Shown: positions 33,057-43,100, numbered from the stretch's first letter. The stretch: DNA of 64,000 nt from Amoeboaphelidium protococcarum X5 (GCA_023515725.1 JALDTO010000215.1:211053-275052), one strand, 5' to 3'. Translations and numbers: made by a program. Notes: generated from the letters alone by a model not told the origin.

Positions 33057-35186
<2,130 letters not shown>

Positions 35187-35310
35187 TATTATGTTGAATA
35201 ATTTTTGTAATTGAAAATTGTGTTAGATACATTTAAGAAGAGATCAAAAGTAACGCATAAAAGTTTTTGTCAATTTCTTCACCTTCAATGCTCTGTTTAT
35301 AAGGGGTTTC

Positions 35311-35945
35311 GATTAGGCCTCCCAAATAAATGAAGAGTATGGAAAAAATTTGCAAATATTTGAGTTTCAATCGAACATATTGCGGGGGGAAATATTTGAT
35401 GTTTGTGCAAATATATTCGATCAAATATTATATTTGATATTTGTATTACCTCACTTATTGTTCAAGAAGATTAGTCGATGTTATGTAACAACGCCCCGTC
35501 AAAGTCCATAATATTTGCATCTTCATACTCATAAACGGTTATCTTCAATTCGCACAGGCGTACCACGATCTCGGGGTAACATTTCCGAACGCAAGTTAGG
35601 CCTGGCTACTACGCTTAGAGCTAGACTGAGCTTTGCCTTTCCCCATGACTAGCAGACTTAGTACAGGAAGATAATGAGCGCGAAAGAGGCTCGAAAATAG
35701 ACATAGCTTCATAAGAGGCGTAAACATCACCTCTTGATGGCGTTCTACAATTAGATTAACGCCACGGGACGGAGAATATCGAAGACGTGTCAATCACGTT
35801 TACACATAATATATTGCAACAAGTAAATCAAATATTTAAAAACATTTTAAAATATTTCCAATCGAATATTGTCTACTCAACTTTATTTGATATTTGTGCA
35901 AATCAAACCAAACAAATAACAAATATTTAATTGGGAGGCCTAATC
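35311..35945. mobile_element. Non-autonomous TIR DNA transposon (MITE-like; possibly hAT-derived)
   Basis: 15-bp perfect inverted termini GATTAGGCCTCCCAA (35311-35325) / TTGGGAGGCCTAATC (35931-35945), extending imperfectly with TAAAT; subterminal arrays of AAATATTT-type motifs at both ends. Confidence 0.85.
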
Positions 35946-36242
35946 TTGAAGTCAGCAATTTTCACTACACTATAAAGCGGTAAAAAAACTTGGTTTATCT
36001 GTTGAGCTGAAACCGTGATGACGCGTTTCACTGACTAACTCGCTATCTTTATCACACAAGAGTTGATACAAAATATACTTGTTATATCTCAAATTCACTT
36101 CACCCTTTTACCTTATACTTAACATTATCTTGATAAGTACGATTGGAATAGTGCGTTGGATACAGCAACCAAGTTAAATAGGCAATTGTTAAATCATATA
36201 TGAAAAAATGATGTATCTAATTCATGCAAGATCAGTCATGTT

Positions 36243-37832
36243 TCAAGGCTTATAGTCAACTTCCGGGACAAATTTGCTAGGGATGAATGCCTTAGGAATT
36301 TCACCATCAGGATGTCTTTATATAGATCTTGACAGGAAGAAGATGTCTCCAGCTCCTAGCTCGTCAGCGTGGTACTAGACTTAGCAACCTTCATCGCGAC
36401 AAACGGAGGCATAACCAGTTCTGAGGACCCGCCTCTCCAGTCCTTTACGGATACATTCATAACACGTGCTGGACGTATTCAACTCCGGAACAACAATGGC
36501 TCTTGCATGATCATTCAGAACGCCCATGAATTTTCTAACAGGGAACTAATTGTTGTTGATGCGGTCAGATATGGCCCATGCACCATAGTAAATCGCAAAC
36601 TTGACGCAATCCTGACTTTTTAACACAGAAACGCCAAGAACTTCCCTCGCCATATCAAGAATCGCATGTCTTTTATTAACTTTTTGATTATGTTGCAGCT
36701 TGAGAGTAGCGCGTGAGCTATAATAGTCCATCTAATCTTCCAATTTTGAATATGACTCACGCAGAATACATCTCAATTTAAGAGTATCCCCATGAGTCTT
36801 GGGCAATTAGAACTAACTACAGACCACAGAAAAATCTTATATTTATCGACCATACGCAGCACCCCCAACGCGAGCCAGGTAATTTCCTTTAAAAATAACG
36901 CTACGGCGAGCTTATTCATAACAAATTTGATTCTCCCGGGAGGCCTTACTAATGCGGAGCAGGACAGAGTAGGAGATGTAATTTTTTGTTCAGAATAAAT
37001 GGCTATCTCAATGGCACCTTTTGATATCGACTTTTGGAGCAGGGAACTTATAACAGATCCTACTACAAGACTTATTACTAGCAAAATCTTATTCCATCTA
37101 AAGCTCGATACGCTAGATCTCAAATTAAAATTGTGCAGCAGAATCCATAGAGATATCTGAGTCCACTTCATAATCAGACAGAACATCATTGTGGGGATCA
37201 CCATCTTCATCACGCGTAATCTTGTAGTCAATACCGACAGTAAAGGATACAAGCTTTTCGAAGGCTGTCTCAGTAATGAACTGAACAGTATCGTCCTGCA
37301 AGACTTAGAAAATAGATGTCCACTGTTTAATTACTTAGGGTCTTGGCGTTATATCAGCGTCGTTCTAGACAAAAAACTCCATAATTTCCAAATGATGCTT
37401 TTGCGGGTGGGTCAGAGATTTCGCATGAAATTTGTAGATTATTGCGTTCGTTATAGACTACAATGTCAGCCTCGGTATGAATATCTGATCTTGCTTTAAG
37501 CAGATAGTGTCCAACAAATTATATATTGCAGATAGACGTTATAGCCGTCTTAAAACTGTGCACAAACCACTCGGATAAAGTCTATTCGTTTAGGATTTCA
37601 TTATTTTTACACTGTACTTGCGACGTTCCTCCTTCTATATGTTTATTTTCCAGGATGAAGTGCTTTGCCATCTTCACGCCAAGCGCGTATAACAGTATAT
37701 AACTTTTATAACGGACACCTTCAAAAGAGTAGGCGGCGGCCAATGGGACAGAAGATACCAAGTCTACTTCGGTAGTAGTATATCGTACCACTCCTGAATA
37801 GCAGCAACCCGTTCATTAATACTCTCCCTCAT
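36243..37832 (-). pseudogene. Decayed Fanzor/TnpB-like RNA-guided endonuclease gene
   Basis: C-terminus IYYGAW…FPVRKF…AIVVPELNTSSTCYEC…VCRDEGCQVQYHADELGAGDIF…PKAF matches RuvC-II E + CxxC/CxxxxC finger + RuvC-III D. In-frame TGAs at 36990 and 37008; frameshifts near the 5' end. Confidence 0.75.
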
Positions 37833-38010
37833 TTTATTCAGTCTAGAACTATATTCCTAGTGGAAATTGCGATTAAAATCGTATCTGCTGGTGAAGTATT
37901 CTTTTGGGTAAGGAAAAGGTAACGCGCCACAACGAATTTCTTCTTTTATGAAAGTACGAACGAAATTGCAGCCAAATCTCTTCTCTGCTTTTAATATCAC
38001 AACCAAAACC

Positions 38011-39737
38011 ATGATATTCGCTAATCATTTAAAAAGCTAATCTCGTGTCGTTTTGAATTAAATATATCAAGATTCTCCGTCTTCATGCCTCGCAGTGTTC
38101 AGAATGTTGCAATACGGTTCGCAATTGATTCTGATGCGATTACTTACAGCACCGCATGAACTTTCCATCAGCTCCGTGTTATTGAGATCATGGTTTATGT
38201 CAACGCCTCAAGGTCGCTTACAGTATGAACAGTCGGTAGAGCAATTAAAGTCTCTCGCCATTCTATTACCGGGCCCTGGAAGCGATGTTGATGATGATGA
38301 TGATGATGTGATGGGCATGGAGGGAATGGATGGCGATCTCAATACTGATGAAGTTTACACAGTGAACGCGCAATTCAAATTAGGACTCACATAGACTTTA
38401 TTAGGAACGTAAGATTGTTAAAGTAAATTTTTATGAATTCTCGATGGTTAGTTTACATCATAAAGTGTAGTGCAGAGCGAGGATCCTTTGGAATCTAATG
38501 TTAATCTATTGATTTGACCAAGAAGGCGTCAATGCTCTCTCCCGCCCAGTTAGAATATTTTGCAAGTACAAAATGGGAAGGTATTCTGCATTTTATGGTT
38601 GGATCTGGTCAGTAGTTGAAAACAGTGACACCTTCATAGAATGTCCTGTAATTGCTACTGGATTCTGGCCTTATGCAAGTGTTGGATGGAGATATAGATC
38701 GAAAAAGAAAATCATCAACCAGAGCTGCCACTTCTGATATGCATATTACTAATCTAGGCTTTTAATTTCTATTGCAGGATATAGTCACGTAGGTGTAGAG
38801 TATTCTCCTTTATTACGCGGATGCTGTATAAAAACTCAATGGAAATAATGTTCGTGTCCAAGTTGAAGTCTTTCAGATGATATTCATGTTGGGGCAGTTA
38901 CAGATTGGTCGACCATATGAGATCACTTTAAGTCAACAGTCGCGGTATACAGAAACGCAGATTACTCTCTTGGATGATCTAAGTGAACTGGGCCTCGTTC
39001 GTATAGTGTAGAGTGATTCTAATCTACTGGTATTCACACCCACTTAGTTATGCTCTGCTATTAACGCGTCCACTTCATCATCTGCGGTATCGTCTTCGTC
39101 ATCTCTATAGATTGGTAGTAATAAGTTTAACAATACTTAAGTACATCAGCAAGACTCCTTTATTATTGTGGAAACCAATTTCCGAGTGTATGCTTACACG
39201 GATTCACCTCTCAAGATATCCATCATATCGCTATTCACTCAGATCAATGCCAGGTTCCCCAACTTTGTGGTTGGTCAAGTAACGAGAGATTCAGTGAGAC
39301 GGGCATTAAGGAATGGTATTACGGCCAAGTTGATTTGCTAGTTTCTTTAATCTCACGCACATCCTATTGTGGTCAAGGCGCAGCAATAGTAACAGTATGG
39401 AATGAGCCATCAGAGTAATGTTCCGCCATCGGTGATTGATCAGATTTGCTTGTGGGAGATTGAAAGGAATCGATTGGCTCTGAAAGATGGCTTTTTATAC
39501 CGCGACTTTAGTGTGGAAGAAGAGTGGGAGGCTACGCTGAAGTATGCCCAAGATCTTAATATTCTATTATGGACATCGACGCCCAGTACAATGCTATCCT
39601 AATAGAGTTCATCATCATCATCAGTTACTGGTCTTAGTCTGCCAGTCAATAAGAGGCAGCTGGTTGTAAGTGCTGAAGGCCATCAACTGCTCAAAGAGTT
39701 TGTTAAAAATTGGTCCATCTAGCAAAAGAATTAGTGA
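38011..39737 (+). CDS. TFB2: TFIIH subunit Tfb2/p52; intron 38409..38470
   Basis: [14 protein letters not shown].(Q)GF(Q)[64 protein letters not shown]. Confidence 0.95.
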
Positions 39738-40124
39738 TTATTATTATACACACCAAGTTTCTTAAAGTGACTAGATACACGTATTTTAGTCTCTTGTTGG
39801 TTGGTATTAAAGGTTTTACCGATCGTATAAAGAGTTAGTTCTTCACACCAATCTTTCTCAGTTAGAGCTTTCTCTGACTGCCTGACCGACTGTCTTTCCT
39901 CTCTCGCTCGTTCTCAATCGCAGCGAAACGGAACGGAACGCGCCGTAAAAACTGTCTGATCGACCGTCGAAGGATCATCTCTTTCTTTTCTTTGTCACCA
40001 ACCGCAGTAAGTGTGTTATCATATCAGGAGTCCTACCGTTCTAATTAAAGATCAAGTATTAGGATTAAAACTATCTTATTTTGAAAGATTATTTTATTAT
40101 TTACAGAGATTTGTTCGAGACGTA

Positions 40125-43100
40125 ATGACCAAGTTGATGCTGTCGTTGGATGAGGCGGCCAAGGATAGTCCTCTGTTTAGAGCCACTCTGTCCAAGATTG
40201 AAGATGATATTGAACAGGTGGCCTAGTGGCTGGATTCTTGTATCCGTGCTGGAAGAGGATTTAATGAAGAGTTGATAAAGTTTAACAGTATGGCCACTCT
40301 CCTCGCACATAGATTACATCTGGCTCATCGTGGATAGTCATCACAATCATAAGAATAGTTGTCTCCTAATGATGGTGCTAGGAGGCAATAGTTTATAGAT
40401 TCACAAGTCACCACAAAAATGTTGGATACATTTAGCGAAAGTTTGCAGTGTATTAGTCCATTTAGTTAAAAGTTGATTGATGAAGTGGAAGAGTTGCTGA
40501 TAAGTCCTCTTGTTGCGTTACTCAAGTACGAACTGGCTCATTTGAAGGAGAAGCGGCGCAACTATGAGCGTATAGTGGACAAGTATGAGTACCAGGTGGG
40601 GAAGTATGTTGGTATTAGCAGATAAAAGGAGCCTTCTGCCATAAGAGAAGATTCATTTTAACTATATGATGTTCGCAAGTCTTATATAGCCGCAACTTTG
40701 GATTATACGTGTGCTATTGTGAAATTTAAGCGTAAATTGGATGTGGTTCTGTACGAGAGTATTGATCAGCTGTATGAGCAATTTACCGAATTCTACTCCA
40801 ATTGCTAGTAGATTTACGATGGATTCAAGCCTAGAATTTCAGAGATAAAGCAGGTGTATGAGCGCAATAAAGAATAGCTGGATGAGTACAGCGCAGATTA
40901 TGAAAGCACCACGCCATTAATGATTTAACAGTTGATTGCGAAAGCTAAACCATCCTCAGCTCTGCCTATAAACACCATACCTGAAAAGCCGGCTGTTACT
41001 GAGCAATCACTTACGCATAAAGCCGGGTATCTGTACAAGAAATATGGTGCTAGGACTGCGATTGGGGTGGCACAATGGAATAGAAAATGGGTCATCGTTC
41101 AGAATGGCAAACTCCTATTTCACACCATGGTGAATAGATCTACTATCGGGGTATCTTATTCTCTTCCGCTCTCACTGGTGGAAGTTCGTATAGATGACAA
41201 GTCTGATCGGCGTTTTGTATTCGAGCTACTCACCAATAAGAAGTCTTATTATTTTCAAGCGGAGACGGAATAGGATCTTCTTACTTGGGTTGAATGTATC
41301 GAGGCTGCAAAATTGTACTCCATGGATCGAGATAATATGGACAGTGTCCGCTTGGATGATGAAAAGATGCTGGATGATGACGAGTATGAGGAGACGTTGA
41401 ATGTTGAAATTACGGCCTCTGTATAGGATGTCACTAGCGCATCTGACCAGTCTGGTGTTTTGATGCCATCCACTTAATAGCCACTTCTACTCAGTGCCAA
41501 AGTTGTGCACTTTGTCAAGTATCCGAACGCTGCAATGAGGAAGAAGAATCAGGAATTTCATTATGCCGTCAAGGCTGTCGGGTCTGATGAATATGTGATG
41601 GAGGCTTTCACCTCGGCCTTCTGCCCAAAGAATAGCAGTGAATGCATACCTGGAAAGTTGTATCTCACTCAGAAATCTATATGCTTTGTCAGTTCTGCTT
41701 CCGCTTCCGGATCGATAATTCTTCTCCTACCACTCAGTCAAGTGAAGTCTGTACATAAGAGCGATTACAATGGCACATCCTCTCTATACTACTCGGTGTC
41801 TCAGTTATCTCAGATGGTTGACTCTCAAGAGTATGAGGTGGTTAATGTCGATCATATTGTACAGGTTCCATTTGAATCTGACAAAGCATTTGGTGCGTCA
41901 CAACTGTTGATCAATAATGTTTAAAATCAGGAGAGAAGTGCGCAGAGTCTATTTGATGAGATCTACGCCAAGTATCGATCTTCACCTGCAGAGTAGATTC
42001 AGCAGCTATAATAGCAGTAGTAGTAGTAATAGAAGATTTAGTAATAGCAATAATTACAATAACAAGTAAAGTTGCCAACTGATGAACAGGGCGGTGTGTA
42101 AACTACTTATAAGTGGCCTGAAGATGCTCCTGCTCAGCCTTAAGATGAGGTAAAGTGTGGCTGTGAGAGTCATTTTGAGCGGGAAGAACACAATCTGGAG
42201 CTCGATGTTCCCGCACATGTACTCTTTGCATAGTTATTTGAATAGAAGCTGATTTTTGAATAGGTGCATCAGCTGAGAAATGATTGGGATGTCACAATAT
42301 CTGATTGGGCTGTAAATGATGGTAGCAACTCTGATGGTAGTGGTGATTAATAATAGAAATCTCGCACAGTCAGATGGATGTTTAATGTGAATAATCCAAT
42401 GGTTAGCCTCAAGACTACAGATTGTATTGAAGTGTAGACTGTGACTAGTGAACGCAAGTACTTGTGCTATGTTGTGGACTGCTTTAGTAAGACTGTGAAA
42501 GTTCCATATGGTGATGCTTTCTAGACACAGACGCGGTACTGTATTACATACATTGATGCTAGTAAGTGCAGATTGCGTATTACAATTGGTGTTGAGTGGT
42601 TCAAAAATCCAATGGTGAAGAGTATTATTAAATCTCAAGCAATGAAGGGACTTACTGATTATCTAAAAGATTTAGTCAAGATTATTCAGACTCAAGTTGT
42701 CAAGTCACCTGATGGTAAAAGCCTAGGACCAGGACTTGATAGTAAGTCTGCAAAGGCTGTCCCATCTCAATCTGGAGTTGCTTAAAAGAGCACACTTGGT
42801 GTAAATGATTTGTCAGTATCTTCGATTATTTCCACATTATTGGACATCACCAGCTATTTTACTGTCTAAACGATCGCTGCTGTTTTATTCACCCTCGTTG
42901 TGATGCTGACGTTGTAATTCTTTTTAAGTAAATCTCCTGTTTAGTAATCGAGTAGTCATCAGTCTTATGGTGATCATCATAACCATCATCATCAGTAGTA
43001 GTACTAGCAATAGCCAATTGCGCTGTAGTACGACTCTATATCCTAAGATGTGGTGGGTATTTACCTACGTGATATTCAAGATTCATTGTTGAATAGCAAC

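Follow-up and report, generated by a model that had tools for sequence, protein, structure and literature searches.

Fanzor1 proteins are widespread in fungi and protists (PMC10432273), and a "DPG / E-alt" signature, with a rearranged RuvC-II, has been described in Fanzors (Yoon et al., PMC10711439). At least two homologues from Amoeboaphelidium occidentale, KAI3658238.1 and KAI3657820.1, are among the proteins that Saito et al. tabulated in a 2023 supplement (PMC10432273). A literature search gave no paper mentioning Fanzor together with aphelids. Amoeboaphelidium protococcarum belongs to the aphelids, the sister group of Fungi, and parasitizes green algae. We analyzed a 64,000-nucleotide stretch of its DNA, called the window below, in which a sequence-only reading had placed the relic of a Fanzor/TnpB-like gene at 36243-37832 on the minus strand, written in a host code where TAA and TAG (TAR) stand for Gln.

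RESULTS

Both TAA and TAG encode Gln in the host

Ubiquitin has universally conserved Gln residues at positions 2, 31, 41 and 49. In this genome, the loci for polyubiquitin and for ubiquitin fusions have TAG or TAA as the codons for Q2, Q31, Q41 and Q49. Therefore, both triplets are read as Gln, and the host code proposed earlier was borne out. Under this reading the window has 106 TGA-free stretches of at least 150 codons, compared with 15 under the standard code, and its ORFs of more than 1000 codons contain 50-70 TAA/TAG. When TAR positions were compared with the columns of a Fanzor1 profile, Gln was the most enriched residue (1.8-fold), but weakly; the ubiquitin test, rather than this weak enrichment, is decisive for the Gln reading.

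A Fanzor1-like remnant lies between two host genes

The remnant is found within a 2.7-kb intergenic space. Downstream of it is a gene for a DEAH-type helicase with an HA2 domain (33060-35243, minus strand), and upstream is the TFIIH p52/Tfb2 gene (37961-39767, plus strand), pieces of which match PF03849 and PF18307. In runs from a related strain Tfb2 is expressed; a GT..AG intron of 62 nt (38409-38470) is spliced out, and the poly(A) site lies at 39767. In DNA run X1, a second haplotype about 7% diverged was seen over parts of Tfb2. The space also contains a 635-bp element at 35311-35945 with 21-nt terminal inverted repeats (TIRs) that are 95% complementary (GATTAGGCCTCCCAA...), probably a non-autonomous DNA transposon. 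A 126-nt dispersed repeat, also non-autonomous, follows at 35999-36124 and occurs at least 40 times in the genome, at 70-88% identity; it lies 120 nt downstream of the stop of the relic, its depth in the DNA run is about 20 times that of its flanks, and it has no evident link to Fanzor loci.

The genome was searched with a 54-aa piece from window positions 36384-36545, and 12 places were found. Three of them hold intact ORFs of what we call family B when read with code 6 (L014:5571-7802, L015:5690-7936 and L016:5883-7997), each with 705-749 codons including 25-30 TAR; others are broken. The intact proteins are about 700 aa long from a conserved start Met. Thus, the intact sisters that had been suspected do exist. 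An HMM made from these three proteins was then used for a six-frame hmmsearch over window positions 35500-41000. It matched 36255-37220, all in one frame, with E=5.2e-58 (HMM positions 425-743), and no match was obtained outside this interval, including 37221-37832. In tblastn searches, the three proteins matched the relic with E values of about 1e-36 to 1e-38.

The coding remnant spans 36246-37220 on the minus strand and corresponds to about residues 425-743 of the intact sisters. From the N to the C terminus it contains an acidic linker, a broken RuvC-I, a helical region, the RuvC-II strand, an alternative Glu, a zinc ribbon, RuvC-III and an IPKAF tail. Its ORF ends with a TGA at 36243-36245 (minus strand), a point at which, according to the tail alignment, sister B1 stops as well. 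The minus-strand frame of the sequence-only reading was correct, since the peptides that it quoted are read exactly when the codon phase is counted from 38000. Its interval stood in part: 36255-37220 matches family B, but the upstream stretch at 37221-37832 (minus strand) has no detectable Fanzor-family homology in any frame.

Profile searches identify the relic and its sisters as Fanzor1-like

The same genome has a canonical Fanzor family, family A. A 114-aa C-terminal piece of this family (from L013:5527-7713) has 824 relatives in a library of 1.8 billion proteins, many of them 675-740 aa long. We aligned 25 public homologues of family A to make a profile, A2. Against solved Fanzor1 proteins, A2 gave E values of 1.5e-34 for GtFz1 (nearly end to end), 1.3e-33 for SpuFz1 and 9e-28 for PpFz1, compared with 1e-11 for Fanzor2 L79 and about 1e-4 to 1e-7 for TnpB/Cas12f. 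Because the Fanzor1 structures score far above Fanzor2 and TnpB, A2 is a Fanzor1 profile. The code-6 translation of the family-A ORF in L013 matched A2 nearly end to end (profile positions 6-655, E=9e-176). The intact family-B proteins of L015, L014 and L016 matched it with E values of 2e-26, 1e-22 and 6e-22, respectively, over both N- and C-terminal parts; their N-terminal REC/WED region matched A2 positions 52-300 (iE of 4e-14 to 5e-7). The window relic matched in the C-terminal region, at profile positions 491-605 (E=3e-9). When shallow profiles of family B were compared with those of families A, C and D by hhalign, only the C-terminal 160-180 columns or so aligned (E of 2e-7 to 5e-3). The N-terminal relation was therefore not shown by hhalign but is shown by the public Fanzor1 profile A2.

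PF07282 scored the sisters at 26.1-27.5 bits with stops read through (cut-off, 26.3), and the 114-aa family-A piece scored 46 bits. Pfam found no family in the standard-code stop-free pieces of the window itself; the assignment of the relic therefore rests on the custom profiles. A profile of the C-terminal pieces of the genome was also compared with the PDB. All of the top 22 matches were TnpB, Cas12 or Fanzor proteins, and LaTranC, TnpB, L79, Cas12f and CasPhi were reached with E values of 5e-6 to 4e-3. When a 229-aa piece from the middle of family A was the phmmer query, the PDB gave spurious EGF-like matches only.

On the invariant columns of A2, the relic and its sisters share the Gly on the strand of the canonical Glu, the alternative Glu and the first CxxC, and the RuvC-I Asp of the sisters also aligns with an invariant column. 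In the relic, the Gly is that of FAIYYGAW at 36582-36584 (minus strand; column G590 of P0004 after hmmalign to the Fanzor1 profile). On this strand canonical TnpB has its RuvC-II Glu, and a Gly is the Fanzor-type arrangement. The alternative RuvC-II Glu (VVPELNTSS) is kept at 36483-36485 (minus strand), in the invariant column E624 of the Fanzor1 alignment, and C-Y-E-C, the first CxxC pair of the TNB zinc ribbon, is kept at 36453-36464 (minus strand). The second pair of the relic has degenerated to C-x4-C, where the sisters have C-P-[KR]-C. The RuvC-III Asp is found at 36363-36365 (minus strand) within Y-H-A-D-E-L-G-A-G-D, whose canonical form is R-D-x-N-A-A-x-N-I. Both TAA and TAG occur in frame in the zinc-ribbon region (C-q-V-q-Y-H-A-D). 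The sequence-only reading had named this Glu, this Asp, the diverged RuvC-III and the Gln codons of the zinc finger, and all were seen at the codon level; its identification of a Fanzor1/TnpB relic and the match that it expected to TnpB, Cas12f and Fanzor structures were likewise upheld by the family-B and A2 profiles, the shared columns and the PDB comparison.

The window copy is 5' truncated and disabled

The two TGAs reported earlier are in frame, and both fall within the former RuvC-I motif. One, which is disabling, is at 36990-36992 (minus strand), and the other is 6 codons upstream, at 37008-37010 (minus strand). A Leu aligns with the catalytic Asp of the sisters (saDlG / vDPG). The N-terminal 425 codons or so are absent from the relic, with no match in six frames over 35500-41000. 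From the start of homology (37220) to the Tfb2 transcript (37961) there are about 740 bp, and about 1275 bp would be needed for the missing half. The relic is therefore truncated and not merely frameshifted. Thus, the copy is damaged as claimed, with RuvC-I interrupted and its Asp lost, but the 5' frameshifts of the earlier description were not found, the gene being 5' truncated instead. Only 2 TGAs are present in the approximately 322 codons of the relic versus about 8 expected at equilibrium, which indicates that decay is incomplete. The segment at 36246-36989 (minus strand) is 248 codons long without a TGA and has 10 in-frame TAA/TAG.

Runs labelled X5 and X7, from the related strain, were treated as RNA-like assemblies, because the Tfb2 intron is skipped in them and the poly(A) end at 39767 is present. 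These assemblies cover only 36203-36840 of the relic, with a depth of about 3 versus 25-66 for Tfb2. Both RNA-like samples have 7 extra nucleotides in the relic after 36475 and lack one nucleotide at 36783. The closest relatives of the relic, L002 and L003, are degenerate too and are only 65-67% identical to it in DNA. Between the relic and L002, dN/dS was 0.17 with dS saturated, which suggests that most of the divergence took place under constraint and that inactivation came later. Within a 36-nt patch (36297-36332), the relic and L002 exceed 90% identity, compared with about 65% otherwise; L003 has a near-matching patch, and contigs from other loci join here in three runs. Upstream of the relic, 271 bp at 37422-37692 are skipped by one contig of DNA run X1, a presence/absence variant.

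No element ends or guide RNA were found at the relic

Alignment of the flanks had been suggested as a way to define the element ends and the omega-RNA. It did not succeed for the relic, whose ends are not definable and which has no conserved 3' flank: the flank has no similarity to those of the sisters, and no block is shared among subfamilies. A candidate TIR pair at 36214-36235 and 37485-37506 (22 nt, 82%) was rejected; it has no counterpart in any sister, and chance alone would produce about 0.3 such pairs. A search of 35000-38500 with Rfam gave no match. The folding z-scores of the relic 3' flank (36096-36245 and 36125-36245) were +1.2 to +1.3; over this flank, the family-A 3' tail and the B2 3' region, the z-scores ranged from -1.5 to +1.3, none of them significant.

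Family B has an altered RuvC-III motif

Among family-B copies, dN/dS was 0.31-0.39. The RuvC-I motif reads vDPG in subfamily B2 and saDlG in subfamily B1. The RuvC-III motif is [HD]-A-D-x-L-G-[AG]-[AG]-[ND] versus R-D-V-N-A-A-R-N-I, and the sisters read [HD]-A-D-x-L-G-[AG]-A-N; the Asp is kept in every member, and the Arg (R658) and Asn (N661) that are invariant in A2 are replaced. The tail, I-P-K-A-F-I-P-S-K-Y-I-P, is strongly conserved. Family-B copies belong to repeat units with sharp shared boundaries, 3.8 kb in B2 (2 copies, 89% identity) and more than 5.1 kb in B1 (3 copies, 95% identity). TIRs, a target site duplication (TSD) and an adjacent transposase were looked for in these units, and none was found; most family members were analyzed as 3.1-kb loci only. 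A low-sensitivity scan of metagenomes with a second family-B motif alignment returned one locus, a bacterial contig matched by chance. Because of that sensitivity, the scan is no evidence that family B is absent elsewhere.

The genome holds at least 41 TNB-domain loci

A whole-genome search with PF07282, reading through stops, gave 41 places, 36 of them at or above the cut-off. Grouped by sequence, these TNB-domain loci, at least 41 in number, form about five families. Family A is represented by about a dozen near-identical copies, which share sequence up to ...GTGAAAAATACAG and then TA, 88 nt past the stop, and diverge beyond. A complete family-A Fanzor1 element is present at L013:5438-8790 (G000:C13, about 151437-154789). 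It is 3.35 kb long, with TIRs of about 25 bp and a TA TSD, and its ORF lies at L013:5527-7713; further copies are L019-L031. This element is located inside a family-B gene, whose halves (HMM positions 471-604 and 607-715) flank it. The frame of the family-B gene closes across a single TA, so that the empty site can be reconstructed. Family A is therefore bounded by TIRs, makes a TA TSD and was mobile at a time when family B was already present.

Within the 5' part of the family-A element, in the opposite orientation, L013:8266-8499 (plus strand) has a stop-free reading, ...V-P-R-Y-H-S-T-K-L-C-S-C-C..., which looks like a fragment of another TnpB-like C terminus. One A. protococcarum protein, P0161 (KAI3635929.1, 708 aa), has a long N-terminal region with no evident Fanzor motifs on reading, followed by a family-A-like Fanzor fragment ending in V-P-E-F. 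This GenBank model is probably a chimera that spans nested transposons.

TAR usage differs between families

In the host genes of the window, TAR makes up 57% of the Gln codons and 5.0% of all codons. The TAR share of Gln codons was 49-65% in families B, C, D and E (49-59% in family B alone) and 23-32% in family A, whose GC content is 0.46-0.47 versus 0.40 for the host. The TAR share of family B is close to that of the host, which supports the long residence proposed in the sequence-only reading. The low TAR share and high GC content of family A suggest that it arrived more recently than family B, possibly from a standard-code donor. The family-A ORF ends with CAA-TAA-TGA, which fits an old TAA stop now read through by one codon.

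DISCUSSION

Positions 36246-37220 (minus strand) are, with high confidence, a decayed, 5'-truncated pseudogene of a family-B gene for a Fanzor1-like RuvC nuclease of the TnpB superfamily. The ancestor of the relic would have been a transposon-borne RNA-guided DNA endonuclease like the characterised Fanzor1s, with its guide (omega/fRNA) presumably encoded at the 3' end of the element. It was probably still functional during the divergence from L002, as the dN/dS of 0.17 implies, and would have died later, leaving a copy in the window that should now be without function. Three points argue against parts of this account. The C-terminal stretch of 248 codons is free of TGA, although equilibrium would predict about 6, and is weakly represented in the RNA-like assemblies; Pfam recognizes no family in the window's own standard-code pieces; and the RuvC-III departs from the invariant R-D-x-N of Fanzor1. 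The Pfam result would fit a relic unrelated to Fanzor, a chance match or a member of another zinc-ribbon family. We rejected this explanation and give it practically no weight, given the E value of 5e-58 to sisters that match the Fanzor1 profile over both halves and the 22 of 22 top PDB matches of the C-terminal profile.

The first point bears on whether a truncated but functional protein is still made from the 3' ORF, such as a DNA/RNA-binding fragment that has been domesticated or a factor that regulates related elements. The candidate would be a protein of 162 aa starting at the Met at 36729-36731, with the RuvC-II strand, zinc ribbon and RuvC-III. A run of 248 TGA-free codons has a probability of about 0.001-0.004 at 2.2-2.6% TGA per position, dN/dS against L002 is low, and low-depth RNA-like contigs extend over 36203-36840. 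Nevertheless, such a protein would lack RuvC-I and the entire REC/WED half and would have a degenerate second zinc pair; frame-breaking indels of +7 and -1 nt lie inside the ORF in both RNA-like runs of the related strain; the depth is about 10-20 times below that of the neighboring gene; and with dS saturated, the low ratio mostly reflects old constraint. We therefore consider a surviving protein improbable. Still less probable, in our judgment, is that the remnant matters as RNA, its 3' end and flank giving an omega/fRNA-like transcript that serves intact family-B proteins in trans. Guide scaffolds of Fanzor and TnpB do overlap the 3' end of the ORF (PMC10432273, PMC10711439), and the 36-nt patch at 36297-36332, more than 90% identical between the relic and L002, would agree with such a role. 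However, the 3' flank is unlike that of any sister, has no Rfam match and folds with z-scores of +1.2 to +1.3, its part at 35999-36124 is an unrelated dispersed repeat, and no element end can be defined.

The pseudogene itself matters little, as one more dead transposon gene in an intergenic graveyard of transposable elements. Because Fanzors of the genus are already in published survey tables, it is an ordinary member of a family that is known and widespread. Of greater interest are other parts of the genome, with the intact family-B genes and their atypical RuvC-III and with the recently mobile family A. Family B may be fully ameliorated to the TAR=Gln code, with purifying selection still acting at three or more intact loci. 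That it is an old Fanzor1 branch, so far found only in this genome and with a rewired RuvC-III pocket, is a tentative proposal that we hold to be rather doubtful. The family could encode an active nuclease whose catalytic geometry is unusual, or else an RNA-guided binder that has been domesticated. Its altered RuvC-III amounts to a natural experiment, as the residues concerned do not vary elsewhere. The genome also provides several diverse, intact genes of Fanzor1-like type and an element that targets TA and has moved recently, all of which could be tried as compact editors.

The genetic code affects how such genes are found. It had been argued that standard-code mining would miss the family. 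This holds for ORF pieces of family B, which fail Pfam: the longest standard-code piece is 123 aa, the TNB piece of L016 reaches 17.5 bits, and the window piece scores nothing. It does not hold for gene models, since the GenBank models of family-A-like genes of A. protococcarum that we looked up include full-length ones (one of 708 aa, Gln throughout), annotated as "hypothetical protein," and at least two A. occidentale homologues are tabulated by Saito et al. 2023. Standard-code, ORF-based mining fragments these genes, and at least 41 loci come to light when a search tolerates stops or uses the host code. TAR-codon amelioration may serve as a rough relative clock of transposon residence in a host with a reassigned code. 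If true, the TAR gradient from family A through families B-E to the host, together with the CAA-TAA-TGA end, would date the Fanzor invasions relative to the code change.

Compared with known systems, the relic shares the RuvC plus TNB zinc-ribbon C terminus with Fanzor2/IS607-type TnpB (mimivirus L79, 9b0l) and TnpB/Cas12f. However, those proteins are about 400-520 aa long and lack the long Fanzor1-type N-terminal region of the family-B sisters, and A2 scores the Fanzor1 structures better than Fanzor2/TnpB by at least 20 orders of magnitude. A. occidentale KAI3658238.1 and KAI3657820.1 come from the same genus and use the same TAR=Gln code as the relic, but they belong to other subfamilies, one being 1219 aa long and the other a 232-aa fragment with V-V-D-E-Y-N-T-S-K. 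The closest resemblance is to the Fanzor1 proteins of Guillardia theta (9cer), Spizellomyces punctatus (8gkh) and Parasitella parasitica (9cf0). Like these, the sisters are about 700 aa long, with N-terminal REC/WED, a split RuvC and a TNB zinc ribbon; subfamily B2 has the D-P-G RuvC-I Asp, and family B has the Gly on the canonical Glu strand, the alternative Glu before T-S-x-x-C-x-x-C and a C-terminal tail of the type [RI]-P-x-x-F. Both reside as dispersed repeats in eukaryotic nuclear genomes. Family B differs from these Fanzor1s in that [HD]-A-D-x-L-G-[AG]-[AG]-[ND] replaces R-D-x-N-A-A-x-N-I in RuvC-III, in that no TIR, TSD or guide RNA can be defined, and in that about 4% of the codons are TAA/TAG read as Gln. 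The window copy further lacks the N-terminal half and RuvC-I and is no working gene. Family A of the same genome has the full canonical Fanzor1 set, together with TIRs, a TA TSD and a conserved 3' tail of about 88 nt.
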